Source of the DNA: Anaeramoeba ignava BMAN
Lineage: Eukaryota > Protista > Anaeramoebae
Length of the DNA stretch: 64,000 bases
Assembly (NCBI GenBank): GCA_028826165.1
Contig: JAPDFW010000094.1
Span: 124,001-188,000 of the forward strand
Direction of reading: 5' to 3'
The translations under genes were made by a program, and so were the position numbers. The notes under the pieces are model-generated. The model searched no databases. It was given only the letters and a program-made list of their open reading frames with translations, and was not told the DNA's origin. Shown in pieces: positions 12,299-30,524 of this stretch. How positions within the stretch are numbered: the first letter of the stretch is position 1; each line of letters starts with the position of its first letter.

Positions 12299-13177
12299 AT
12301 GCAAGATCAACAACAAGAACAAGAAAAACAACAAGAACAAGAAAAACAACAACAAGAAAAACAAGAAGAAACAAAACAACAAGAAGAACCAAAAGTAAGA
12401 AAAGGAAGAAAAGGAAGAAATCCAGAAAGCAAAAAAGGAGAAAAAAAAACAGATGTAGAAGTTAAAAAATGGAAAGGTTTGTTTTAAAATTTTACATAAA
12501 AAACACAAAATTTAATCTAATTTAATTTAAAAAAATTTGTTCCAAATATTTAAACAAAATCAACTTTTAAAACAACAGGAATTGCGTAAGAGATTTTATA
12601 AATCAAAAATTAAAAATTAAAATAAAATTAAAATTAAAATTAAAATTAAAATTAAAATTAAAATTAAAATTAAAATTAAAATTTAAATTAAAATTAAAAT
12701 CAAAATTAAAATTAAAATTAAAATCAAAATTAAAATCAAAATTAAAATTAAAATTAAAATTAAAATTAAAATTAAAAATCAAAATTATAATTAAAATTAA
12801 AATTAAAATTTAAAATTAAATTTAAAATCAAAAATATTATTAAAAATTAAAATCAAAATTAAAATTAAAATCAATATTAAAATCAATATTAAAATTAAAA
12901 TTAAAATCAATATTAAATTTAAATTAAAAATCAAAATCAATATAGAGTATGGCAATATGATGGGGATGATATATGTGGAATTTGTAGAAATCAATTAATG
13001 GAATTATGTATTGAATGCCAAGCAAATCCAAATCCCACAACAAATCAAGAATGTACTGTTGCTTGGGGAATTTGTGGTCATGCTTTTCATTTTCATTGTA
13101 TTTCCCGTTTCTTAAAAACAAGAACAATTTGTCCATTATGCACAAGAGATTGGGAATATCAAAAAGTTGGTTATTAA
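12299..13177 (+). CDS. RBX1: RING-box protein RBX1 paralog A, 3 exons including a 7-nt microexon at 12579-12585
   Basis: Spliced product ...VEVKKWKG|IA|[76 protein letters not shown], a RING-H2 with the RBX1 signature. Confidence 0.9.
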
Positions 13178-13404: not shown

Positions 13405-14237
13405 ATGGAAACAAATCAAGAACAAAATCAACAAGAAAATCAAACAAATCAACAAACAAATCAACAAACAAATCAAGAACAAAATCAACAAACAAATCAA
13501 GAACAAAATCAACAAACAAATCAACAAACAAATCAAGAACAAAATCAACAAGAAAATCAACAAGAAAATCAAGAACAAAATCAAGAACAAAAACCAAAAG
13601 TAAGAAAAGTAAACAAAAAATCAAATCAAAAAACAGAAGTACAAATTAAAAAATGGAATGGTTTGTTTTAAAATTTCACATAAAAAAACAAAAAATTTAA
13701 TTTAATTTAATTTAATTTAATTTAATCTAATTTAATCTAATTTAATTTAAAAAAATTTGTTCCAAATATTTAAACAAAATCCTCAACTTTTAAAACAGCA
13801 TTTGCGTAAGAGATTATAAATATAAATATAAATATTAATATAAATATTAATATAAATATAATTATAAATATAAATATAAATATAAATATAAATATAAATA
13901 TAAATATATAAATATAATTATAAATATAAATATAAATATAAATATAAATATAATTATAAATATAATTATAAATATAAATATAAATATAAATCGAAATAGA
14001 TTATGGGAATGGGATTTAGAAGATGATACATGTGCAATATGCCGTAATAATTTAATGGATTTATGTCGTAGATGTCAAGAAAATTCAGATTCATCAACGG
14101 CACAGGAATGCAATGTTGCTTGGGGTGTTTGTGGTCATGTTTTTCATTTTCATTGTATTTCTGGAGGTTTCCTCAAAACAAGACATGTTTGTCCTTTATG
14201 TGGAAAAGATTGGGAATTTAAAAAGATTGGTTATTAA
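13405..14237 (+). CDS. RBX1: RING-box protein RBX1 paralog B, 3 exons including a 7-nt microexon at 13799-13805
   Basis: Spliced product ...VQIKKWNA|FA|[78 protein letters not shown]. Confidence 0.88.
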
Positions 14238-15160: not shown

Positions 15161-15340
15161 TTATAATTTTAAAAAAAAATTTTTTATTTTTGGAACTTAA
15201 AAAGAAAATAATAATAAACATATAAATTAATATAAACTTGAAAAAATATGAAGAAGAAAATAAAAAGAAAAAAAAAAAAGCAAAAAAATTATTTTTCATT
15301 TTTTTTTTTAAATCAAAACAAAAAACAAAAAACAAAACAA

Positions 15341-18071
15341 ATGACATTACCAGTTAGAAAATGTGTACTTTTCCGGCACGGAATTGGATATTTTGAAAGA
15401 GAAGAAGAAATTGAAGGAGATCAAAACTTGGTTCTTAGTTTTAAAGAAGAAGTAATGAACGATGTATTAAAAAGTTTGACTATATATGATAACGGAGGAG
15501 GATATGTGAGCGGAATCAGTTACGAAGGCATGGGAAACAAAGTACCGAACATTTTGATAAATTTGGATAGTTCAGAGTCAATGAGCCAATTAATGGCAGA
15601 AACTCAAGGCGCAAATGTTGCTGTTACTTATGCTGGCGAGGTTTATAAAGGAACCATTGTCGGAATAGAACCAAAAACTCAAAAGAAAGAAGTCGATAAA
15701 AACACCACTTTTTTCGAAACTAATTTTTTGACGTTATTAATTCATGAAAATCAACTTAAATCGTTTGATTTAATGGAAGTTGAAAATGTCGAATTTTTGG
15801 ATGAAGAAATTAAAAGAGATTTACAACATCTTCTGGACGTTTTAATTTCTTCCAAAAAAAAAAGTATCAAAAATGTGACTGTGTTTTGTAAAGGAGAAAA
15901 AAAACGCACTTTCAAAGCTACTTATATCATTCCATTGCCTGTTTGGAAAACTTCTTATCGTGTCATGTTAGGGGCAAAAGAACCTATTCTTCAAGCTTGG
16001 GCTATTGTTGATAATACAACTGAAGAGGACTGGAAAAATATAAAGTTGGAACTTGTTAGTGGTCTTCCTGTTTCTTTTATTCATGATCTTTATTCACCAA
16101 GATTCCAAGTTAGACCAAAAATTGAAGTTCAAGAAGAAGCTGCTTTTGCTCCTCCTGTTTTGGAGCAAGCTCTTGAAAATTTTGATGAGGATGAATTGTA
16201 TGAAGTAATGGAAGAAAGAAAGGAAAAAGAATATGAAAAGAAACCTAAAATGAAAATGAAAAATCAATGGGAATGGCGAGAAGAAGTAGAGCTATGCCAC
16301 AAAAAAAAAGTGAAAAAAAAAGTAAAAATTTAATTATAAAATTTATTTTTACATGAAATATTTGAAAAATTTAATTCAAAAAAAAAAAGTTGTTTCAAAA
16401 CAAGAGAAATTGGAAGCATTTTCAAAATCAGTTAAACCAGATGTGCAAACAAGAAAATCTGAAGCAGTTGATCTTTGTCATTACTCAATATCAGTTCCAG
16501 TATCAGTTAAAAGAGATCAATCAGCATTAGTTCCAATCTTCCAAGGAAATTTCGGAGGAGAACAAGTATGTGTTTACAACGAATCAGTTCGAGCCAAAAA
16601 TCCGATGTCAACAATGTTATTCAAGAACACGACAGGATTGATTCTTGAAGGAGGACCAATAACAATGTATGAAAAAGGCGAATATATTGGAGAAGGAATG
16701 CTTGACACAATCCAACCAAACGATGATAAACTGATTCCATATGCAGTTGAACTTGGATGCATTGTGACAACAAGTAACGGAACACAATCACAAAGCACAC
16801 ATCAATCGGTTGTATCGAACGGAATACTTTCGACTCAAAGATTCTATTATTATTGGAAAAAATACGAGATCAATAACAAATCAACAAAAAAACTTGATTT
16901 CATTCTTGAACATCCAATCACTTATCAAACCAATTTATTCAACACAATGGATCCATATGAGAAAACAGACAACTACTACCGTTTCAGATTCCCAATTCCT
17001 CCAAAGCAAAAAATCGTGTTTGTTGCTGTCGAAAGAAAACAGTTGAGTGATACATTCTATCTTGACAACTTGAATGACCATCAAATAGTCACTTGGCATT
17101 CACAAAATTTGATTGATGAAAAAACAAAACAAATCCTCCACGAAATGGCAACCAAATTCCAGATTCGCGCAGATTTAAACAACCAGATTTCACGAGCAAA
17201 ATCTGAGCTCAACGACCATTTCAGAAATCAACGAAGAATTACCCAAAACATGAAATCACTTCGTGACACTTCAGATCAAAGAAAACTAAGAGATCGATAT
17301 GTTCAAGAATTGACAACAAGTGAAGATGAAATTGAGAAGATTCGAGAGAATATCAAAAAACTCGAGAAAAACCTTCATGTTCTCCAAACAAGTTTGACAA
17401 AGGAAGTCAATGCACTTCGTTATGAAACAATCCTCAACGTTCCAAAACCAGTTCTTCCTCAATCACAAATCAAAATTCAAGCTGATAAATTAAATCAAAA
17501 ACTGACTCATTTCCACGAAAAAGGAGACGAAGCTTTGCCCTCAGGATTTGATCAAGATTACATTAAATTAGGAATTGAATGCGATTCAGAATTAGGCACA
17601 CTTCACGACAAAAGAGACCACGAAGAGGAATGTATTGTTCGGTCAAATTTCCCAATTCCAGATTTTGTTAAAATTTATTACTTTGAAATGACAGTTGAAG
17701 ATCCTGGAAAATCAGAAGCTATTGCAATTGGTGCTGTTCCTGATGATCATACTCTTAAAGGAATGCCTGGTTGGGAAAACTCAATCGGTTATCATGGTGA
17801 CGATGGTAATATGTTCTTCTGCGATGGTCAAGGCGCTAAACTTGGTCCTACTTACTCAAAAAATGATACTGTTGGTTTCGGTTTGGATCGAACTACTAAA
17901 AATGCTTTTTTTACTCATAATGGAAAATTGGTTAAAGTTATTCCAGATAATAAGTTTGCTTTGTTCTCAAAAACTCTTTATCCTTGCATTGGTTTAGCTT
18001 CACAAAACGCAAAAATTACAGTTAATTTTGGAACAATTCCATTCCTTTACAAACTTGAATCAAAATATTAA
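15341..18071 (+). CDS. DUF4140/DUF4139-family protein (bacterial type) fused to a C-terminal RanBP9-like SPRY domain; one short intron (~16322-16389) and an apparent 1-bp frameshift near 16262
   Basis: MTLPVRKCVLFRHGIGYFER, MNDVLKSL, WKTSYR and LQAWAIVDNTTEEDWKNIKLELVSGLPVSFIHDLYSP are DUF4139-family motifs. YYFEMTV...MPGWENSIGYHGDDG...GPTYSKNDTVGFG...LYPCIGL...VNFG is a SPRY domain. Confidence 0.8.
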
Positions 18072-19435: not shown

Positions 19436-21307
19436 TTATTTTTTCATTTTGGTTTTGACCTTTGACAATATTTTTAAAATTTTAATTAAAAAATTAAACA
19501 TTTTTCTTTTTCTTTTTTCTTTTTCTTTTTCTTTTTGATTTTGATTATTAAATTTGTTAATTAATAAATCAAATAAATTTGGATTTGTTTGATTTAATTG
19601 AAAATAATCAATTCCAATTTGAATTTCATCAATAATTTCTTGTGTAATTTCAATTCCATTTTTAATTTGATTTGAATAAATCCAATATTCAAATATTTGA
19701 AATGATTTATTACTTAATTCACTATAATCTGTAACTTTATTTGATTTATCTTCAGTTACAGATAAAAACATTCCTCGATATAATTCACTTCTCATTATTA
19801 ATATTAATTTTGGAAATTTATATTGTTTTTCTTTTCTTCCAATTATAAAATCTTTTTCGTTTTCATTTAAATAAATTCTTTTAATTGTTTCTTCAATTTT
19901 TTCATTGGAATTTATAATTTCTTTAATTTCAAAATATAATTTTGGATTTATTTTGGAATTATTTGAATAAATCATTTCAAATATTTGATTTGATTCTTTA
20001 ATTGATTTTTTTGAAATAATTTCTTGAAGTTTTTCAATTTGATTTTGATTTTGATTTAATCTATATTTCAATATTAATTTATGAGCTTCAATTATTTCTC
20101 CATTTTTGGTTTTAAATGAAATATCACAAAATTCTTTTCTTCGAAATAATTTTATCAAATCTTCTTCAAGATTAGAAAAAGAAAGAGGAGAATAATAAAG
20201 AAATGAATTATGATTTCCACAAGAAATATGATAATTGGAAATATTTTCATTAAATCTTAATTTAGGAAATTCAATTTGAATTGGAATTAAATGAGTATTT
20301 GTATCTTCAATTCCTAATTGACCATATTCATTATATCCAAATACTATTAATTTTGAATTGGAAGTTAAAATCAAAGTATGATCTCTTCCAAAAGAAAAAT
20401 CAAGAATATTATCATTATCTTCAAATAAAGATGATTTGATTTCAGTAAATTCATAAGTATTTTGATATTTGCCAAGTCCATTATATGAATATTCTCCACA
20501 TGAATAAAGTTTTCTTTTTGTATTTTGATTTTTATCTTCTTCTTCAATCAACATTATTGAATGGAATGCACAATGAATATCAATTATTTTACCTTTTGGA
20601 ATATTTTGGATTTTGGTTAATTTTTTGATGATTATTTCTTTTCTTGATATTCCTAATCCAAGTTGACCATATTTATTATATCCGCATCCAAATAATTCTT
20701 GATTTGAATTTAAAAGAAAAATATGATTTGAAATTCCTGAAAATATTTTAGAAACATTTTTCATCATTAAAATTGGTTTTTCTGTTTTTTCAAATGGTTT
20801 AGAATCAAAACCAAGTTGACTCAAACGATTTGAACCAATTCCATAAACATTTTGATTTGAAGTTAATAAGTAAATTGAATAAGCTCCAGAAACAATATCT
20901 TGAATTATTCTATCATTTGTATCTTTAATTAATGATGAAATATTGATAAATTCTTTTGGATTTTTTGGATTAATATTTTTTCCTTTGGCAAATACATTTC
21001 CTTCTATTGTTAAAATAGCTTCATTGAGATAACCAACAGTTACTTTTTGAATATTTTCTTCAATTTGGATTTTTTCAGGATTTTGTTTTGAATCACTTTC
21101 TCTTAAATATTCTATTGCTTTTCCATTTTTAAAAAGGAAAATTGTTGAATAATCTCCTGATGAAATTTGTTTAATTTGTTTTTCATTTTCATTTTCATTT
21201 TCATTTTCATTTTCAAATTTAAATTGAATTGGTTTTGTTATTATATTTGGTTCATTTTGGATAAGTTTTGGATTTTGATTTCTTCCAAAAAATATAATTT
21301 CATTCAT
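19436..21307 (-). CDS. RCC1-repeat beta-propeller + tandem BTB/POZ protein, copy 1 (C-terminal extension probably a frameshift artefact)
   Basis: RCC1 motifs CGYNKYGQLGLG, FGYNEYGQLG and GRDHTLIL. BTB-like FCDISFKTKNGEIIEAHKLILKYR and KDFII...KLILIMRSELYRGMF...FEYWIYSN. Confidence 0.9.
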   Translation of the reverse strand: MNEIIFFGRNQNPKLIQNEPNIITKPIQFKFENENENENENEKQIKQISSGDYSTIFLFKNGKAIEYLRESDSKQNPEKIQIEENIQKVTVGYLNEAILTIEGNVFAKGKNINPKNPKEFINISSLIKDTNDRIIQDIVSGAYSIYLLTSNQNVYGIGSNRLSQLGFDSKPFEKTEKPILMMKNVSKIFSGISNHIFLLNSNQELFGCGYNKYGQLGLGISRKEIIIKKLTKIQNIPKGKIIDIHCAFHSIMLIEEEDKNQNTKRKLYSCGEYSYNGLGKYQNTYEFTEIKSSLFEDNDNILDFSFGRDHTLILTSNSKLIVFGYNEYGQLGIEDTNTHLIPIQIEFPKLRFNENISNYHISCGNHNSFLYYSPLSFSNLEEDLIKLFRRKEFCDISFKTKNGEIIEAHKLILKYRLNQNQNQIEKLQEIISKKSIKESNQIFEMIYSNNSKINPKLYFEIKEIINSNEKIEETIKRIYLNENEKDFIIGRKEKQYKFPKLILIMRSELYRGMFLSVTEDKSNKVTDYSELSNKSFQIFEYWIYSNQIKNGIEITQEIIDEIQIGIDYFQLNQTNPNLFDLLINKFNNQNQKEKEKEKRKRKMFNFLIKILKILSKVKTKMKK

Positions 21308-21382
21308 TTTTGAAAAGAAAAAAAATGAAAAAAATGATTTTTAATTTTAATTTTGATTTTAATTTTAATTTTAATTTTGATT

Positions 21383-23200
21383 TTAATTTTGATTATTAAA
21401 TTTCTTAATTAATAAATCAAATAAATTTGGATTTGTTTGATTTAATTGAAAATAATCAATTCCAATTTTAATTTCTTCAATGATTTCTTGTGTAATTTCA
21501 ATTCCATCTTTAATTTGATTTGAATAAATCCAATATTCAAATATTTGAAATGAATTATTACTTAATTCACTATAATCTGTAACTTTATTAGATTTATCTT
21601 CAGTTACAGATAAAAACATTCCTCGATATAATTCACTTCTCATTATTAATATTAATTTTGGAAATTTATATTGTTTTTCTTTTCTTTCAATTATAAAATC
21701 TTTTTCGTTTTCATTTTCATTTTCATTTAAATAAATTCTTTTCATTGTTTCTTCAATTTTTTCATTTAAATTTATAATTTCTTTAATTTCAAAATATAAT
21801 TTTTGATTTATTTTGGAATTATTTGAATAAATCATTTCAAATATTTCATTTGATTCTTTAATTGATTTATTTGAAATAATTTCTTGAAGTTTTTCAATTT
21901 GATTTTGATTTTGATTTAATCTATATTTCAATATTAATTTATGAGCTGAGATTATTTCTCCATTTTTGGTTTTAAATGAAATATTACAAAATTCTTTTCT
22001 TCTAAATAATTTTATCAAATCTTCTTCAAGATTGGAAAAAGAAGAAAGAGAATAATAAAGAAATGAATTATCATATCCACAAGAAAGATGATAATTGGAA
22101 ATATTTTCATTAAATCTTAATTTAGGAAGTTCAATTTGAATTGGAATTAATTGATCTTTTGTATCTCCAGTTCCTAATTGACCATATTCATTATATCCAA
22201 ATACTATCAATTTTGATTTGGAAGTTAAAATCAAAGTATGAGCATTTCCAACAGAAAAATCAAGAATATTATCATCATTTTCAAATAAAGATAATTTGAT
22301 TTCAGTAAATTCATAAGTATTTTCTCTGTATTTTTTACCAAGTCCATTATTTTGATAATATCCACATGAATAAAGTTTTCTTTTTGGATTTTGATTTTCA
22401 TTTTCAATCAATATTATTGAATGAATACTTCCACATTGAATATCAATTATTTTACCTTTTGAAATATTTTGGATTTTGGTTAATTTTTGGATTTTTGTTT
22501 CTTCTCTTCTTGATTCTCCTAATCCAAGTTGACCATATCTATTATATCCGCATCCAAATAATTCTTGATTTGAATTTAAAAGAATAACATGTTCAGAAGT
22601 ATTTCCTGAAAATATTTTAGAAACATTTTTCATCATTAAAATTGGTTTTTCTGTTTCATTAAGTGTTTCATAATCAAAACCAAGTTGACAATATTCATTT
22701 GAACCAATTCCATAAACATTTTGATTTGAAGTTAATAAGTAAATTGAATAAGCTCCAGAAACAACATCTTGAATTATTCTATCATTTTTATCTTTAATTA
22801 ATGATGAAATATTGATAAATTCATTTGGATTATTTGGATTAATATCTTTTCCTTTTGCAAATACATTTCCTTCTTTTGTTAAAATAGCTTCATTATGAAC
22901 ACCAACAGTTACTTTTTGAATATTTTCTTCAATTTGAATTTTTACAGGATTTTGATTTGAATCACTTTCTCTTAAATATTCTATTGCTTTTCCATTTTTA
23001 AAAAGGAAAATTGTTGAAAAGAAACCTGTTGCAATTTGTTTAATTTGTTTTTCATTTTCATTTTCATTTTCATTTTCATTTTCATTTTCATTTTCATTTT
23101 CATTTTCAAATTTAAATTGAATTGGTTTTGTTATTATATTTGATTCATTTTTTATAAGAATTGGATTTTGATTTCTTCCAAAAAATATAATTTCATTCAT
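21383..23200 (-). CDS. RCC1-BTB-BTB protein, copy 2
   Basis: 605-aa intronless ORF with the same motifs as copy 1. Confidence 0.92.
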   Translation of the reverse strand: MNEIIFFGRNQNPILIKNESNIITKPIQFKFENENENENENENENENENEKQIKQIATGFFSTIFLFKNGKAIEYLRESDSNQNPVKIQIEENIQKVTVGVHNEAILTKEGNVFAKGKDINPNNPNEFINISSLIKDKNDRIIQDVVSGAYSIYLLTSNQNVYGIGSNEYCQLGFDYETLNETEKPILMMKNVSKIFSGNTSEHVILLNSNQELFGCGYNRYGQLGLGESRREETKIQKLTKIQNISKGKIIDIQCGSIHSIILIENENQNPKRKLYSCGYYQNNGLGKKYRENTYEFTEIKLSLFENDDNILDFSVGNAHTLILTSKSKLIVFGYNEYGQLGTGDTKDQLIPIQIELPKLRFNENISNYHLSCGYDNSFLYYSLSSFSNLEEDLIKLFRRKEFCNISFKTKNGEIISAHKLILKYRLNQNQNQIEKLQEIISNKSIKESNEIFEMIYSNNSKINQKLYFEIKEIINLNEKIEETMKRIYLNENENENEKDFIIERKEKQYKFPKLILIMRSELYRGMFLSVTEDKSNKVTDYSELSNNSFQIFEYWIYSNQIKDGIEITQEIIEEIKIGIDYFQLNQTNPNLFDLLIKKFNNQN

Positions 23201-23416
23201 TTTTGAAAAGTAAAAAAAATGAAAAAAATGATTTTTAGATTTTTAATTTTAATTTTTAATTTAATTTTAATTTTAATTTTAATTTTAATTTTAATTTTAA
23301 TTTTAATTTTAATTTTGATTTTAATTTTAATTTTAATTTTAATTTTAATTTTAATTTTAATTTTAATTTTAATTTTAATTTTAATTTTAATTTTAATTTT
23401 AATTTTAATTTTAATT

Positions 23417-25225
23417 TTAATTTTGATTATTAAATTTGTTAATTAATAAATCAAATAAATTTGGATTTGTTTGATTTAATTGAAAATAATCAATTCCAAT
23501 TTTAATTTCTTCAATGATTTCTTGTGTAATTTCAATTTCATCTTTAATTTGATTTGAATAAATCCAATATTCAAATATTTGAAATGATTTATTACTTAAT
23601 TCACTATAATCTGTAACTTTATTAGAAGTATCTTCTGTTACAGATAAAAACATTCCTCGATATAATTCACTTCTCATTATTAATATTAATTTTGGAAATT
23701 TATATTGTTTTTCTTTTCTTTCAATTATAAAATCTTTTTCATTTTCATTTAAATAAATTCTTTTCATTGTTTCTTCAATTTTTTCATTTGAATTTATAAT
23801 TTCTTTAATTTCAGAATATAATTTTGGATTTATTTTGGAATTGTTTGAATAAATCATTTCAAATATTTGATTTGATTCTTTAATTGATTTATTTGAAATA
23901 ATTTCTTGAAGTTTTTCAATTTCATTTTCATTTTGATTTAATCTATATTTCAATATTAATTTATGAGCTTCAATTATTTCTCCATTTTTGGTTTTAAATG
24001 AAATATTACAAAATTCTTTTCTTCTAAATAATTTTATCAAATCTTCTTCAAGATTGGAAAAAGAAAGAGGAGAATAATAAAGAAATGAATTCCAAATTCC
24101 ACAAGAAACATGATAATTAGAAATATCTTCATTAAATCTTAATTTAGGAAGTTCAATTTGAATAGGAATTGAATGAAAAAAATCTATAACTCCAATTCCT
24201 AATTGGCCATATTCATTATTTCCAAATCCTATCAATTTCGAATTATTTGTTAAAATTAAAGTATGATAACGACCAACAGAAAAATCAAGAATATTATCAT
24301 TTTCAAATAAAGATGATTTGATTTCAGTAAATTCATAAGTATTTTGATTTTTGCCAAGTCCATTATTTTGATAATATCCACATGAATAAAGTTTTCTTTT
24401 TGGATTTTGATTTTGATTTTGATTTTGATTTTCATTTTCATTTTCAATCAATATTATTGAATGAATACTTCCACATTGAATATCAATTATTTTACCTTTT
24501 GAAATATTTTGGATTTTGGTTAATTTTTGGATTTTTGTTTCTTCTCTTCTTGATTCTCCTAATCCAAGTTGACCATATCTATTATATCCGCATCCAAATA
24601 ATTCTTGATTTGAATTTAAAAGAATAACACCTCTTGATGAATTCCCTGAAAATATTTTAGAAACATTTTTCATCATTAAAATTGGTTTTTCTGTTTTTTC
24701 AAATGGTTTAGAATCAACTCCAAATTGACCTGAATAATTTGAACCAATTCCATAAACATTTTGATTTGAAGTTAATAAATAAATTGAATAAACTCCAGAA
24801 ACAATATCTTGAATTATTCTATCATTTGTATCTTTAATTAATGATGAAATATTGATAAATTCATTTGGATTTTTTGAATTAATATCTTTTCCTTTGGCAA
24901 ATACATTTCCTTCTATTGTTAAAATAGCTTCATTATGAACACTAACAGTTACTTTTTCAATATTTTCAATTTCGATTTTTTGAAGATTTTTATTTGAATC
25001 ACTTTCTCTTAAATATTCTATTGCTTTTCCATTTTCAAAAAGGAAAATTGTTGAAAAAGTTCCTGATGAAATTTGTTTAATTTGTTTTTCATTTTCATTT
25101 TCATTTTCATTTTCATTTTCATTTTCATTTTCAAATTTAAATTGAATTGGTTTTGTTATTATATTTGGTTCATTTTTGATAAATTTTGGATTTTGATTTC
25201 TTCCAAAAAATATAATTTCATTCAT
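23417..25225 (-). CDS. RCC1-BTB-BTB protein, copy 3
   Basis: 602-aa intronless ORF with the same motifs. Confidence 0.92.
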   Translation of the reverse strand: MNEIIFFGRNQNPKFIKNEPNIITKPIQFKFENENENENENENENEKQIKQISSGTFSTIFLFENGKAIEYLRESDSNKNLQKIEIENIEKVTVSVHNEAILTIEGNVFAKGKDINSKNPNEFINISSLIKDTNDRIIQDIVSGVYSIYLLTSNQNVYGIGSNYSGQFGVDSKPFEKTEKPILMMKNVSKIFSGNSSRGVILLNSNQELFGCGYNRYGQLGLGESRREETKIQKLTKIQNISKGKIIDIQCGSIHSIILIENENENQNQNQNQNPKRKLYSCGYYQNNGLGKNQNTYEFTEIKSSLFENDNILDFSVGRYHTLILTNNSKLIGFGNNEYGQLGIGVIDFFHSIPIQIELPKLRFNEDISNYHVSCGIWNSFLYYSPLSFSNLEEDLIKLFRRKEFCNISFKTKNGEIIEAHKLILKYRLNQNENEIEKLQEIISNKSIKESNQIFEMIYSNNSKINPKLYSEIKEIINSNEKIEETMKRIYLNENEKDFIIERKEKQYKFPKLILIMRSELYRGMFLSVTEDTSNKVTDYSELSNKSFQIFEYWIYSNQIKDEIEITQEIIEEIKIGIDYFQLNQTNPNLFDLLINKFNNQN

Positions 25226-25792
25226 TTTTGAAAATGAAAAAAATGAAAAAAATGAATTTAATTTTTGAATTTTAATTTTAATTTTGATTTTAATTTTGAT
25301 TTTAATTTTAATTTTAATTTTAATTTTAATTTTAATTTTAATTTTGATTTTAATTTTAATTTTAATTTTAATTATGATTTTAATTTTAATTTTAATTTTA
25401 ATTTTGATTTTGATTTTAATTTTAATTTTAATTTTAATTTTAATATTAATTTTAATTTTAATTTTAATTTTAATTTTAATTTTAATTATGATTTTAATTT
25501 TGATTTTAATTTGAATTTTAATTTTAATTTTAATTTTAATTTTAATTTTAATTTTAATTTTAATTTTAATTTTAATTTTAATTTTGATTTTAATTTGAAT
25601 TTTAATTTTAATTTTAATTTTTAATTTTAATTTTAATTTTAATTTTAATTTTAATTTTAATTTTAATTTTAATTTTAATTTTAATTTTTAAATTTTAATT
25701 TTAATTTTAATTTTAATTTTAATTTTAATTTTAATTTAAATTTTAATTTTAAATTTAGATTTTAATTTTAATTTTAATTTTGATTATTAAAT

Positions 25793-27547
25793 TTAATTTT
25801 TAAATTTATTAATTAATAAATCAAATAAATTTGGATTTGTTTGATTTAATTGAAAATAATCAATTCCCCTTTCTAATTCTTTAATAATTTCTTGTGTAAT
25901 TTGAATTTCATCTTTAATTTGATTTGAATAAATCCAATATTCAAATATTTGAAATGATTTATTACTTAATCCACTATAATCTGTAACTTTATTAGATTTA
26001 TCTTCTGTTACAGATAAAAACATTCCTCGATATAATTCACTTCTCATTATTAATATTAATTTGGGAAATTTATATTGTTTTTCTTTTCTTTCAATTATAA
26101 AATCATTTTCATTTTCATTTAAATAAATTCTTTTCATTGTTTCTTCAATTTTTTCATTTGAATTTATAATTTCTTTAATTTCAAAATATTTTGGATTTAT
26201 TATTCTATTTGAATAAATCATTTCAAATATTTGATTTGATTCCTTAATTGATTTTTTTGAAATAATTTCTTGAAGTTTTTCAATTTGATTTTGATTTTGA
26301 TTTAATCTATATTTCAATATTAATTTATGAGCTGAGATTATTTCTCCATTTTTGGTTTTAAATGAAATATCACAAAATTCTTTTCTTCTAAATAATTTTA
26401 TCAAATCTTCTTCAAGATTAGAAAAAGAAAGAGAATAATAAAGAAATGAATTATCATATCCACAAGAAATATGATAATTGGAAATATTTTCATTAAATAT
26501 TAATTTAGGAAGCTCAATTTGAATTGGAATTAATTGATCATTTATATCTCCAGTTCCTAATTGACCATATTCATTATATCCAAATACTATCAATTTTGAT
26601 TTGGAAGTTAAAATCAAAGTATGAGCATTTCCAACAGAAAAATCAATAATATTATCATTTTCAAATAAAGATGATTTGATTTCAGTAAATTCATAAGTAT
26701 TTTCTCTGTATTTTTTGCCAAGTCCATTATTTTGATGATATCCACATGAATAAAGTTTTCTTTTTGGATTTTCATTTTCATTTTCAATCAATATTATTGA
26801 ATGAATACTTCCACATTGAATATCAATTATTTTACCTTTTGAAATATTTTGGATTTTGGTTAATTTTTGGATTTTTGTTTCTTTTCTTGATATTCCTAAT
26901 CCAAGTTGACCATATCTATTAGCACCGCATACAAATAATTCTTGATTTGAATTTAAAAGAAAAATATGTTCAGAAGCATTTCCTGAAAATATTTTAGAAA
27001 CATTTTTCATTATTAAAATTGGTTTTTGTGTTTTTGGAAGTGTTCTAGAATCAAAACCAAGTTGACCTGAATAATTTGAACCAATTCCATAAACATTTTG
27101 ATTTGAAGTTAATAAATAAATTGAATAAGCTCCAGAAACAATATCTTCAATTATTCTATCATTTTTATCTTTAATTAATGATGAAATATTGATAAATTCA
27201 TTTGAATTATTTGGATTGTTATTTTTTCTTTTGGCAAATACATTTCCTTCTTTTGTTAAAATAGCTTGATTATGAACACCAACAGTTACTTTTTGAATAT
27301 TTTCTTCAATTTGGATTTTTACAGGATTTTGTTTTGAATAATTTTCATTTAAATATTCTATTGCTTTTCCATTTTTAAAAAGGAAAATTGTTGATAAATA
27401 ACTTGATGAAATTTGTTTAATTTGTTTTTCATTTTCATTTTCATTTTCATTTTCAAATTTAAATTGAATTGGTTTTGTTATTATATTTGGTTCATTTTTT
27501 ATAAGTTTTGGATTTTGATTTGAACCAAAAAATATAATTTCATTCAT
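25793..27547 (-). CDS. RCC1-BTB-BTB protein, copy 4
   Basis: 584-aa intronless ORF with the same motifs. Confidence 0.92.
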   Translation of the reverse strand: MNEIIFFGSNQNPKLIKNEPNIITKPIQFKFENENENENEKQIKQISSSYLSTIFLFKNGKAIEYLNENYSKQNPVKIQIEENIQKVTVGVHNQAILTKEGNVFAKRKNNNPNNSNEFINISSLIKDKNDRIIEDIVSGAYSIYLLTSNQNVYGIGSNYSGQLGFDSRTLPKTQKPILIMKNVSKIFSGNASEHIFLLNSNQELFVCGANRYGQLGLGISRKETKIQKLTKIQNISKGKIIDIQCGSIHSIILIENENENPKRKLYSCGYHQNNGLGKKYRENTYEFTEIKSSLFENDNIIDFSVGNAHTLILTSKSKLIVFGYNEYGQLGTGDINDQLIPIQIELPKLIFNENISNYHISCGYDNSFLYYSLSFSNLEEDLIKLFRRKEFCDISFKTKNGEIISAHKLILKYRLNQNQNQIEKLQEIISKKSIKESNQIFEMIYSNRIINPKYFEIKEIINSNEKIEETMKRIYLNENENDFIIERKEKQYKFPKLILIMRSELYRGMFLSVTEDKSNKVTDYSGLSNKSFQIFEYWIYSNQIKDEIQITQEIIKELERGIDYFQLNQTNPNLFDLLINKFKN

Positions 27548-27639
27548 TTTTGAAAAAGAAAAAAAATGAAAAAAAATGATTTTAATTTTAATTTTAATTT
27601 TTAATTTAATTTTAATTTTGGATTTTAATTTTGATTTTG

Positions 27640-28270
27640 ATTTATTATTTTAAATAAATTTCCAAATTAAATATTAAATTAAATCTATTCTTATTTTTTA
27701 TATTTTTATATTAAATATTTAAATAATAAAATATTTAAATTTAAAACATTAAATTATTATTTTAAACATGGAATTAAATATTAAATTATATTTTTAAATT
27801 AATTTATAAATTAAATATTAAATTAAATCTATTTCCATTTTTTATATTTTTATGTTAAATATTTAAATAATAAAATATTTAAATCTAAAACATTAAATTA
27901 TTATTTTAATAATGAAATTAAATATTAAATTATTATTTTAAATAAATTTCCAAATTAAATATTAAATCAAATCTATTCTCATTTTTATATTTATATGTTA
28001 AATATTTAAATAATAAAATATTTAAATTTAAAACATTAAATTATTATTTTAAACATGGAATTAAATATTAAATTATATTTTTAAATAAATTTATAAATTG
28101 AATATTAAATTAAATCTATTTTCATTTTTTATATTTTTATGTTAAATATTTAAATAATAAAATATTTAAATCTAAAACATTAAATTATTATTTTAATAAT
28201 AAAATTAAATATTAAATTATTATTTTAAATTAATTTATAAATTAAATATTAAATTAAATCTATTTTCATT
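27640..28270. repeat. Intergenic tandem repeat, ~144-bp unit with alternating A/B variants
   Basis: aaatctatt recurs near 27681, 27825, 27970, 28112 and 28256. Units alternate between aaacatggaa and aataat(g)aa variants. Confidence 0.88.
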
Positions 28271-28321
28271 TTTTCATTTTTTTCATTTTTTCATTTTTTT
28301 CCTTTTGTTATTTTAGTTTCT

Positions 28322-30524
28322 ATGAAAAATTTTCCATCAATTATTAAAAAATTTGATGCTTATCCCAAAACAGATGAAGAATTCCGAATAAAAACATTTA
28401 GTGGAGCAATTGGTAAAATAATAAAATTTAACAAAAAAAAAATCTAAAAAAAAAATTTATTTCTTTTTTTAAATTAAAATAAAAATTAAAATTAAAATTA
28501 AAATAAAAATTAAAATTAAAATTAAGTTTCAATTATTTCTGGAGCAATTATGTTAATTTTATTTATCAATGAAATGGTTTTTTATTTAACACCTGAAGTT
28601 AAACAAGAACTTTATGTAGATCTTTCAAAAGGAGGAAAAATGGAAATAAATTTAAATATAACTTTTCCAGAAATTCCTTGTGATTGTATTTACTTTTATA
28701 ACATTTTAATCATTTATCTTTCAAGAATTAAAATTAAAATTAAAATTAGAATTAAAATTTAGAATTAAGATTAGAATTCATTTATAGAATTAAAATTAAA
28801 ATTAAAATTATTAATATTAAAATTAAAATTAAAATTAAAATTAAAATTAAAATTAAAATTAAAATTAAAATTAAAATTATTAAAATTAAATTAAAATTAA
28901 AATTAAAAATTAAAATTAAAAATTAAAATTAATATTAAAATTAAAATTAAAATTAAAATTAAAATTAATATTTAGAATTAAAATTAAAATTAAAATTAAA
29001 ATTAGAATTAAAATTAAAATTAAAATTAAAATAAAAATTAAAATTAAAATTAAAATTAAAATTATTAATATTAAAATTAAAATTAAAATTAATATTAAAA
29101 TTAAAATTATTAATATTAAAATTAAAATTAAAATTAAAATTAAAATTAAAATTAAAATTAAAAATTAAAATTAAAATTAAAATTAAAATTAAAATTAAGA
29201 TTTACATGTTGATGTACTTGATAGTTCTGGTGAAAGACAACTTGATGTAAATCAAAATTTAGATTTTCAACCAATTCAACAAACTTATTATGGTTATGAA
29301 AAAGGTAATAAATTTTCAAAAATAAAAATATAAAAATAAATATAAATTATTGATTAAAAAAAAATTAAAAAATTTTCCCAAATTCGAAAAATAGTTGAAC
29401 CAGAAAAAGATGATCGTTGTTTATCTTGTTATGGAGCAAAAGAGGGATGTTGTAATACTTGTGATAGTGTTAAAGCAGCATATTTTCAAAGAGGATGGTT
29501 ATTTGATCCAAAAAAAATTTCGCAAGTTTGAATTGAATTTAAATAACAAAATTTTATTCCAACTTTTTTGACATTTTTTTTCCGTTATTTTTTTTTGACA
29601 TTTTTTTTTAATCAATAATTTATTAGTGTCAAAAAAAGAATGAAATTCCTGCAAATTCTCCAGATGTTAACTATGGTTGTGAAATTTCAGGAAAACTTAT
29701 TGTTAATAAAGTTCATGGAAATTTTCATGTTGGATTAGGAAAAAGTTTCCAAAGTGGAAATCAACATTATCATGATTTTACTTTTGAATCTCTTCATCGT
29801 ATTAATTTATCTCATATAGTTCATACACTTTCTTTTGGAAATCCTTATCCAGGAATTATTAATCCATTAGATGGAACTTATTCTATACAAACATTTGATG
29901 GTATTAAAATCAATTAATTTAAAATTTATTTAAAATTTATTTAAAATTTATTTAAAATTTATTTAAAATTAAAAATCAAAATTAAAATTAAAATTAAAAT
30001 TAAAATTAAAATTAAAATTAAAATTTAAAATTTAAAATTAAAATTAAAATTAAAATTAAAATTAAAATTAAAATTAAAATTAAAATTAAAATTAAAATAA
30101 AAATTAAAATCAAAATTAAAATAAAAATTAAAATCGGAAAAAAATTAAAATCGGAAAAAAATTTTTTTAAATAAAAGGATCAATGATGTTTCAAAATTTT
30201 ATTACAGTTGTTCCTACTATTTATCAACCTACTTCTGGAGATCGAATTTTAACAAATCAATATTCAGTTTATGATTATTCAAGAGAAATTTACAAAGATT
30301 CAAATAATGGATTACCAGGAGTTTTTTTCTTTTTTGATTTTTCACCAATTGTTGTTCATTTACAAGAACAAAATAAAAGTTTTTTTCATTTTTTAACTCA
30401 ACTTTGTGCAATTATTGGTGGTGTTTTTACTGTTTCATCTTTAATTGATTCAGCAATTTATCGATGGTCACTTTTTAAAAAAAAAAGATCAACTAATTCA
30501 GATTTGCCAATTAAAAACAAATAA
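28322..30524 (+). CDS. ERGIC3: ER-Golgi intermediate compartment protein 3 (Erv46), about 6 exons
   Basis: KKFDAYPKTDEEFRIKTFSGA, INLNITFPEIPC, CLSCYGA..GCCNTCDSVKAAY..RGW, VNKVHGNFHV, NLSHIVHTLSFGNPYPGIINPLDG, TNQYSV, PGVFF.FDFSPI and LCAIIGGVFTV. Confidence 0.95.

Follow-up and report, generated by a model that had tools for sequence, protein, structure and literature searches.

The stretch of DNA analysed here (the window) is 64,000 nt (contig 95, 124001-188000) of the genome of the protist Anaeramoeba ignava (42.8 Mb, ~18% G+C), the species to which its best protein hits belong, and it carries on its minus strand four paralogous genes, g1 to g4, each encoding an RCC1-type beta-propeller followed by two BTB domains. 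All four are intronless, uninterrupted open reading frames (ORFs) arranged head-to-tail with gaps of 75-567 nt, and g2-g4 are 86-87% identical to g1 in an alignment of the four window copies, identities within the group spanning 86-90%. Coordinates are those of the window, and g2 serves as the reference copy; RLD denotes the RCC1-like domain.

19436..21307, minus strand: g1, RCC1-BTB-BTB paralog, 623 residues; Pfam RLD/RCC1, and BTB in two stretches
21383..23200, minus strand: g2, reference paralog, 605 residues; uninterrupted ORF, Pfam
22052-23200, minus strand: g2 propeller, residues 1-383
21728-22033, minus strand: g2 BTB1, about residues 390-491
21386-21712, minus strand: g2 BTB2, about residues 497-605; predicted CUL3-docking surface at residues 523-543 and 579-585
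23417..25225, minus strand: g3, paralog, 602 residues; ORF, Pfam, alignment
25793..27547, minus strand: g4, paralog, 584 residues; ORF, Pfam, alignment

A preliminary description of this DNA had proposed four intronless, head-to-tail paralogs with a BTB-BTB architecture, and the ORFs and the Pfam hits to propeller and BTB bear out such a tandem array; its scale was missed, the family having >1,100 copies genome-wide. A 26-mer from BTB2 that is invariant in 70/70 sampled copies occurs at 1,263 sites in the genome with at most 2 mismatches, and a 26-mer from the propeller at 1,154 sites with at most 3, while the reversed-pattern control gave 0 sites for both. The family thus counted comprises about 1,150-1,260 copies in A. 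ignava. A six-frame protein search of the genome, from whose 2,925 first-look candidates 74 matches were listed, found the listed ones to be 81-100% identical, mostly full-length and distributed over many contigs, mostly in same-strand runs with a spacing of ~2 kb. Family DNA amounts to ~2 Mb, or ~5% of the genome. The genome paper equates 612 genes with 4.1% of the total, which implies ~15,000 genes and hence, at ~1,150 copies, a share of ~8% for this family, about one gene in thirteen.

The expansion appears to be confined to this species. A database protein search matched 747 proteins, and among the 120 listed all 118 that carry a name are from A. ignava; every full-length relative examined, at identities as low as 36%, likewise belongs to this species. 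In the source records, family members are annotated as "RCC1 and BTB domain-containing" or "Btk-binding protein-related". Short database relatives were considered as possible transcripts and rejected, all of them being genome annotations. In A. flamelloides we found one colinear RCC1-BTB-BTB protein, at only 26% identity, and saw no expansion. [quoted passage not shown] The family therefore shows the lineage-specific tandem expansion typical of adaptor repertoires. Three A. ignava proteins of 838-1096 residues (P0123, P0125 and P0131) form a subfamily with 52-59% identity to g2 and N-terminal armadillo repeats (Pfam ARM) ahead of RCC1-BTB, and four further entries (P0001-P0004) have two propellers each, apparently because neighbouring tandem copies were fused in the gene models.

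The propeller and its variable face

Pfam matched RCC1 in all four window proteins (E 1e-22 to 2e-28), along with RCC1_2; WD40_RLD scored 127-169 bits, so that two copies pass its 150-bit cut-off and two miss it. The AlphaFold2 model of g2 (predicted local distance difference test, pLDDT, 87.6) is a seven-bladed RCC1 propeller, which Foldseek matched to RCC1 (1a12/1i2m), RPGR and the HERC2 RLDs at target-normalised template-modelling (TM) scores of 0.74-0.80, and also to UVR8. Among solved structures UVR8 is the best match by sequence (E 7e-36).

To describe variation we codon-aligned the coding sequences of 70 intact paralogs, taken from the window and from other loci (581 columns), and called a column hypervariable if its entropy among the 70 was at least 2 bits. 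Thirty-six columns qualified, each showing 6-16 different residues; the remaining columns, the entire C-terminal half among them, hardly vary.

Within 22052..23200, minus strand: hypervariable codons of g2: 9, 11, 12, 21, 22, 60, 101, 102, 118, 150, 151, 169, 170, 181, 201, 203, 219, 221
Within 22052..23200, minus strand: hypervariable codons of g2, the rest: 235, 236, 258, 259, 281, 283, 284, 290, 294, 319, 320, 336, 338, 348, 349, 351, 376, 377

These sites sit in the G-x-x-H hairpins and the G-x-N-x-x-GQLG loops (with the stretch before the next strand) of all seven blades. The strands of the model give a blade order of s3, L34 (G-x-N-x-x-GQLG plus the stretch before s4), s4, L41, s1, the L12 hairpin (G-x-x-H), s2 and L23, and the antiparallel arrangement of such a blade puts L34 and L12 together on one face, with L41 and L23 on the opposite one. 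Of the 36 hypervariable columns, 33 fall among the 121 positions of the one-face loops (L12 and L34) and the other three occupy the first s4 residues right after L34, as against 0/84 opposite-face loop positions and 0/214 C-terminal positions (Fisher p = 5e-9).

The preliminary description had quoted series of radical substitutions at equivalent loop tips, and every one was found at equivalent columns of the four-copy alignment: SSGDYST/ATGFFST/SSGTFST/SSSYLST, but also GYLNE/GVHNE, NRLSQ/NEYCQ/NYSGQ, G-ISNH/GNTSEH, GEYSY/GYYQN, GRDH/GNAH/GRYH and GNHN/GYDN/GIWN. The clustering that it inferred from them holds in the larger sample, where all 36 columns lie in or adjoin the two one-face loop classes; variable sites scattered over the structure would have spoken against it, and by strand topology and the UVR8 alignment they are restricted to one face. 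Its remark that many variant residues are aromatic or charged is likewise borne out. At hypervariable sites Tyr makes up 16.7% of residues versus 3.3% (5-fold), and Trp is enriched 35-fold, Arg 2.8-fold and Asp 2.3-fold. The string of 36 residues is unique in all 70 copies, with a median difference of 29/36.

UVR8 shares the seven-bladed RCC1 fold and places these positions in a familiar setting. The G-N-A-H-T of g2 aligns with G-W-R-H-T of UVR8, the hypervariable x-x falling on W-R, and G-Y-N-E-Y-GQLG of g2 aligns with G-W-N-K-F-GQVG. In established structures the GWRHT and G-W-N-K-F-GQVG residues of UVR8 build its dimer and partner interface. UVR8 differs in that it is one conserved photoreceptor, lacks a BTB domain and has invariant Trp/Arg where the A. 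ignava family varies.

One further loop varies in length. Tandem Repeats Finder (TRF) detected a coding hexamer microsatellite in a blade-1 loop of each copy, encoding 5-10 Glu-Asn units, the number differing among copies; residues 33-49 of g2 are disordered in the model (pLDDT <50).

21180-21215, minus strand: (Glu-Asn)n microsatellite, g1
23049-23108, minus strand: (Glu-Asn)n microsatellite, g2
25086-25133, minus strand: (Glu-Asn)n microsatellite, g3
27426-27455, minus strand: (Glu-Asn)n microsatellite, g4

Selection and probable exchange among copies

The preliminary description had inferred diversifying selection on a variable propeller joined to a constant effector half. We compared nonsynonymous (dN) with synonymous divergence by the pairwise, tree-free NG86 method in the 70 paralogs, with loop classes set beforehand from structure.

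Propeller scaffold: dS 0.093, dN 0.072, dN/dS 0.77
BTB half: dS 0.092, dN 0.034, dN/dS 0.38
36 hypervariable sites: dS 0.31, dN 0.81, dN/dS 2.6
L12 loops: dS 0.314, dN 0.497, dN/dS 1.58 (1.04-2.36)
L34 loops: dS 0.142, dN 0.223, dN/dS 1.57 (1.18-2.15)
Opposite-face loops: dS 0.086, dN 0.048, dN/dS 0.55
Strands: dS 0.074, dN 0.064, dN/dS 0.86
BTB half (class analysis): dS 0.089, dN 0.036, dN/dS 0.41

For 97% of sequence pairs, the hypervariable sites have a higher dN than dS. As dS is equal in the two halves of the gene, the constancy of the tail stems from purifying selection and not from gene conversion or homogenisation alone. With dN/dS above 1 only in the loops of one face, and equal dS, the inference of diversifying selection holds up.

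A site-likelihood analysis gave a strongly significant result in the same direction. We used a FUBAR/FEL-like 18 x 18 grid of synonymous (alpha) and nonsynonymous (beta) rates under MG94 x GTR, marginalised over ancestors; a mixture allowing beta>alpha improved on one restricted to beta<=alpha by 456 in twice the log-likelihood difference (2dlnL; propeller 406, BTB half 59), and ~7.6% of propeller sites fell in classes with beta of at least 2.5 and omega >2. To blunt recombination artefacts we repeated the analysis with six segment-specific trees, obtaining a propeller 2dlnL of 339; all 28 sites with p<0.01 lie in the propeller, and the pooled hypervariable sites have alpha 1.35 and beta 3.5 (2dlnL 112). 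Omega above 1 is thus limited to the recognition domain and the predicted cullin-binding domain is conserved, the pattern seen in adaptor repertoires.

The reading frames themselves are also under constraint. Only 8 of ~70 full-length genome matches carry a stop codon, whereas the fitted mutation model predicts, for neutral sequence at t = 0.05 substitutions/site, ~7.5 stops per gene and a probability of 5e-4 that a gene stays intact, indicating that the ORFs are actively maintained.

The evolution of the family is reticulate as well as selected, an aspect that the preliminary description overlooked. Its tree is star-like, with 14% of the length on internal branches, and pairwise dS spans a narrow range of 0.06-0.15. 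The four copies in the window have a mosaic structure: in three 90-nt blocks g2 and g3 are set apart by just 0-4 nt each, but the two blocks that follow show 13-17 differences apiece. Such patterns fit frequent gene conversion or recombination that would shuffle loop variants among copies.

The flanks of the genes are repeated along with them. A conserved ~30-nt element with T-runs and two TCA motifs, ending in CAAAA, precedes each ATG, and (AAAATT)n microsatellites (TRF) occupy the spacers.

21308-21337, minus strand: conserved ~30-nt element upstream of the ATG, g1
23201-23230, minus strand: conserved element, g2
25226-25255, minus strand: conserved element, g3
27548-27577, minus strand: conserved element, g4
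21339-21403, no strand assigned: (AAAATT)n spacer microsatellite
23241-23437, no strand assigned: (AAAATT)n spacer microsatellite
25257-25800, no strand assigned: (AAAATT)n spacer microsatellite, ~90 copies
27579-27653, no strand assigned: (AAAATT)n spacer microsatellite

Conservation of the upstream element is 0.65-1.14 bits/nt over positions -30 to -1 in all 70 paralogs, making it a candidate core promoter of the initiator type, with the 5' untranslated region then being very short; its TCA and T-run motifs are reminiscent of the trichomonad initiator. The spacer repeats follow the stop codon in most of 66 paralogs and vary greatly in length, from 11 to ~90 copies. They could promote unequal or ectopic exchange that spreads the gene unit. 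The same repeat also occurs outside the array, at 28726-29202 and 29919-30134. A mobile-element or viral origin of the array is unsupported: its neighbours are housekeeping genes, its flanks are only microsatellites, and no transposase or terminal repeats were seen.

The BTB-BTB tail and cullin-3

Pfam places BTB in the tail at 31-41 bits (cut-off 20.5), in two separate stretches in g1 and g4, and the model of the tail (pLDDT 89.8) consists of two BTB folds, in agreement with the proposed BTB-BTB architecture. It aligns over its full length (230-240 columns) with the artificial two-POZ chains 4u2m/4u2n, which suggests that a single chain packs its two folds in the manner of a BTB dimer. Single-domain fold matches include SPOP-BTB/Cul3, KBTBD4 and KBTBD2-CRL3 (target-normalised TM about 0.7), and the best solved sequence relative of BTB2 is KBTBD4 (E 0.002).

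The A. ignava genome has ~8 cullin loci. Four candidates for CUL3 were rejected as CUL4-like and one more as CUL1/2-like, and a single CUL3 ortholog was found on contig 58, whose best match is human Cullin-3 (4e-119, versus 2e-101 for CUL4). Its gene is spliced, so we worked with the database protein (P0270), which is annotated "cullin-3a-related", has CUL3s as its nearest relatives and is also present in the transcriptome-derived EukProt. We then predicted the complex of CUL3 residues 1-380 with g2 residues 384-605. The complex scored 0.72, a value reached by 51/78 solved complexes versus 2/108 mismatched pairs, and the best control scored 0.00; across runs contact agreement was at least 64% and partner pLDDT at least 82. 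The predicted contacts join CUL3 residues 42-59 and 110-121 (helices H2/H5) to BTB2 residues 523-543 and 579-585, which supports an interface of the canonical H2/H5 kind. The CUL3 contact stretches are invariant across 32 CUL3s, and 13/17 BTB2 contact residues are invariant in the 70 paralogs and largely kept in relatives of 36-59% identity. A phi-x-E-like motif, V532-T533-E534-D535, lies within the predicted contact, with V532 and D535 invariant. The preliminary description had expected the BTB domains to recruit CUL3; in silico, with an ortholog present and a complex predicted at 0.72 versus 0.00, that expectation is supported.

A candidate receptor repertoire and its alternatives

The explanation that we favour, with moderate confidence, is that A. 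ignava maintains a germline repertoire of >1,100 RCC1/BTB-BTB copies with a selected variable face and a CUL3-docking tail. The four window genes are ordinary members of a recently expanded, A. ignava-specific family of cytosolic proteins, each copy displaying its own combination of ~36 residues, rich in Tyr, Trp, Arg and Asp, on a single face of a rigid propeller of seven blades. Positive selection keeps this face diverse and gene conversion or recombination probably shuffles it among copies, and purifying selection preserves the C-terminal half. For BTB2 the most likely docking site is helices H2/H5 of the one CUL3 ortholog; each copy would then serve a CUL3-RBX1 ubiquitin ligase as substrate receptor, with a target of its own. 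The most plausible targets would be fast-changing foreign or selfish proteins, such as those of viruses, bacterial effectors and mobile elements. That the proteins bind CUL3 and ubiquitinate, and what kind of target they have, is what we infer for this family, and a role in surveillance of foreign proteins is a plausible hypothesis by analogy with MATH-BTB/F-box adaptors and fungal propeller NOD-like receptors (NLRs). The strongest version, an antibody-like innate intracellular repertoire in which >1,000 CUL3 receptors with Tyr/Trp-rich paratopes, diversified by selection and by conversion among cassettes with microsatellite flanks, would each recognise a different foreign protein (of a virus, symbiont or mobile element, or a bacterial effector) and tag it with ubiquitin for degradation, we entertain only tentatively, as something possible that we do not yet expect.

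Several points weigh against this interpretation. The 70 paralogs are the copies closest to g2 and not a random sample, and faces were assigned from strand topology and the UVR8 alignment and not from model coordinates. Phylogenetic conflict affects 58% of informative site pairs, whatever the distance between the sites (pairwise homoplasy index, PHI, p<0.001), which makes single-tree tests approximate, and recombination can inflate likelihood-ratio tests of site models. The high BTB-CUL3 score may reflect memory of solved complexes; position 534 of the phi-x-E-like motif is not fixed as Glu (E 52, N 14, D 3, K 1 among the 70 paralogs); and BTB2 is followed by a single ~12-residue helix to the C-terminus, with no BACK/3-box and no Pfam BACK match. 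None of the 120 best database relatives has a EukProt (transcriptome) source, whereas two divergent relatives and CUL3 do. Finally, NG86 dS is itself raised ~3-fold at hypervariable codons. However, same-amino-acid codon differences at these sites are just 1.6-fold higher (0.076 vs 0.047), suggesting that the dS excess is largely an effect of multiple hits or of deeper coalescence. Because of this modest rise we also rejected targeted hypermutation, whether somatic or of the diversity-generating-retroelement (DGR) type, as the main cause of the variation: what varies is a multigene family encoded in the germline. Neither a reverse transcriptase nor a template repeat turned up when the larger window ORFs were scanned with Pfam, although no search was aimed at either.

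The most radical alternative is that there is no adaptive repertoire at all, the units having been amplified selfishly through their (AAAATT)n flanks, with unconstrained loops and an omega above 1 produced by recombination, alignment or AT bias. The star-like tree with its narrow dS range, the microsatellite-flanked units, the massive phylogenetic incompatibility and the lack of transcript-sourced entries among the best relatives are all as one would expect on that account. It does not explain why ORFs stay intact against 7.5 expected stops per gene, nor why purifying selection acts on both the scaffold and the BTB half when their dS is the same. Tree-free dN/dS for preset loop classes excludes 1, segment-specific trees give the same result, the opposite-face loops have an omega of 0.55 despite being equally exposed, and the enrichment of Tyr and Trp is not expected from AT-biased drift; we regard this account as improbable. 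We would rate as equally improbable a self/non-self system serving allorecognition, or mating or cell-fusion incompatibility, in the manner of the fungal HNWD/NLR WD40 propellers and in place of pathogen or symbiont sensing. The Podospora nwd genes do carry the same signature (PMC1805685, PMC2873952), but such systems usually rest on few highly polymorphic loci and not on >1,000 paralogs, cell fusion in Anaeramoeba is undocumented, and the effector half is here a pair of BTB domains, with no NACHT/STAND or death-effector domain.

A less drastic alternative, unlikely in our judgement yet the most credible of the three, grants that the propeller binds targets but makes the BTB-BTB tail an oligomerisation or scaffold module that does not engage cullin-3, the proteins acting, for example, by sequestration of partners or as RCC1-like regulators of the small-GTPase and membrane-trafficking machinery, which is expanded in Anaeramoeba. 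Many BTB proteins are known not to bind CUL3, and the top fold matches of the tail are transcription-factor POZ dimers; the variable E534 and the missing BACK/3-box point the same way. RCC1-like domains can be guanine nucleotide exchange factors (GEFs), and the genome paper reports expanded Rab/TBC families. Yet >1,000 GEF paralogs with omega >1 on one face would have no obvious GTPase counterpart, and a mere scaffold would leave unexplained that the predicted complex has a canonical H2/H5 interface and scores well above controls that stand at zero, that the contact residues hardly change even among relatives of 36-59% identity, and that the nearest solved sequence relative of BTB2 is a CUL3 adaptor, KBTBD4.

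The closest precedent for the favoured explanation, a repertoire of CUL3 receptors, is provided by the positively selected MATH-BTB/F-box adaptors of nematodes and plants. These are tandem, lineage-specific expansions of cullin-ligase adaptors in Caenorhabditis and grasses, and Thomas 2006 (Genome Res 16:1017, PMC1524861), as summarised in PMC4334554, places positive selection in the substrate-binding and not the cullin-binding domain and proposes foreign proteins as targets. Both systems share a lineage-specific tandem expansion and selection confined to the recognition domain. The A. ignava family differs in having a seven-bladed RCC1 propeller with ~36 hypervariable positions where MATH-BTB proteins have a MATH domain, in its BTB-BTB tail, in its host, a free-living anaerobic metamonad, and in comprising >1,100 copies at only ~0.1 synonymous divergence. 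That number is several-fold larger than MATH-BTB/F-box families. In animals, RCBTB1/RCBTB2 and IBTK have the same order of an RLD propeller followed by BTB; these are conserved single-copy genes that are not known to have hypervariable loops. A sea-star RCBTB1-like protein with colinear RLD and BTB is 24% identical, its BTB aligning on BTB2 of g2 in a pairwise comparison. Fungal HNWD/NWD proteins combine a WD40 propeller of near-identical repeats with concerted evolution and diversifying selection at a few interaction-face positions (PMC1805685, PMC2873952), and thus resemble our family in the beta-propeller scaffold, in how closely the repeated units match, in evolving concertedly or by exchange of repeats, and in the selection on surface positions. 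In contrast, their variation lies between repeats inside a few genes, their propeller is WD40 and not RCC1, and their effector is NACHT plus a death domain; Pfam matched no NACHT/STAND domain in any of the four window proteins.

We found no earlier report of this family. The main text of the genome paper contains no occurrence of RCC1, BTB or ubiquitin, its supplement yielded no family gene ids or PANTHER ids, and no paper in the searchable literature contains both "Anaeramoeba" and "RCC1". Should our interpretation be correct, ~1 in 13 genes of a free-living protist would be given to one diversified recognition family tied to the ubiquitin system, to our knowledge among the largest adaptive-looking repertoires outside animals and plants. 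It would extend Thomas's idea of ubiquitin adaptors as immune receptors to deep-branching eukaryotes, provide a ubiquitin-ligase-based counterpart of NLR and antibody repertoires in a unicellular eukaryote, and amount to a library, made by nature, of stable propeller-based binders that share a constant scaffold. How bacterivorous, symbiont-bearing protists rich in laterally transferred genes discern foreign proteins would then become directly testable. A microbial mirror image may exist in the massive expansions of ubiquitination-related gene families within Chlamydiae that PMC4209131 reports.

The surroundings of the array hold ordinary genes, identified by Pfam as Xrn1, a TFIIIC-like protein, PH and gelsolin proteins and an SPRY protein. 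RBX1 is the RING partner in CUL3 ligases, and two adjacent two-exon RBX1-like genes (12299-13177 and 13405-14237, plus strand) lie 5-7 kb from the array, with RING-H2 exons at 12998-13177 and 14055-14237 (Pfam zf-rbx1, E 6e-17 and 3e-14), a linkage that may be functional or due to chance. Between them and the array, at 15248-18071 on the plus strand, are back-to-back ORFs of 361 and 572 residues, the second ending in an SPRY domain (Pfam E 1e-14), and G+C there rises to 34%, about twice the window average. Among the window copies, g1 alone has a Lys-rich C-terminal extension of ~30 residues beyond the usual ...KFNNQN end (19436-19530). Just upstream of the array, at 27642-28283, lies a tandem repeat with a period of 144/287 nt, present in 2-4.5 copies with 90-95% matches.

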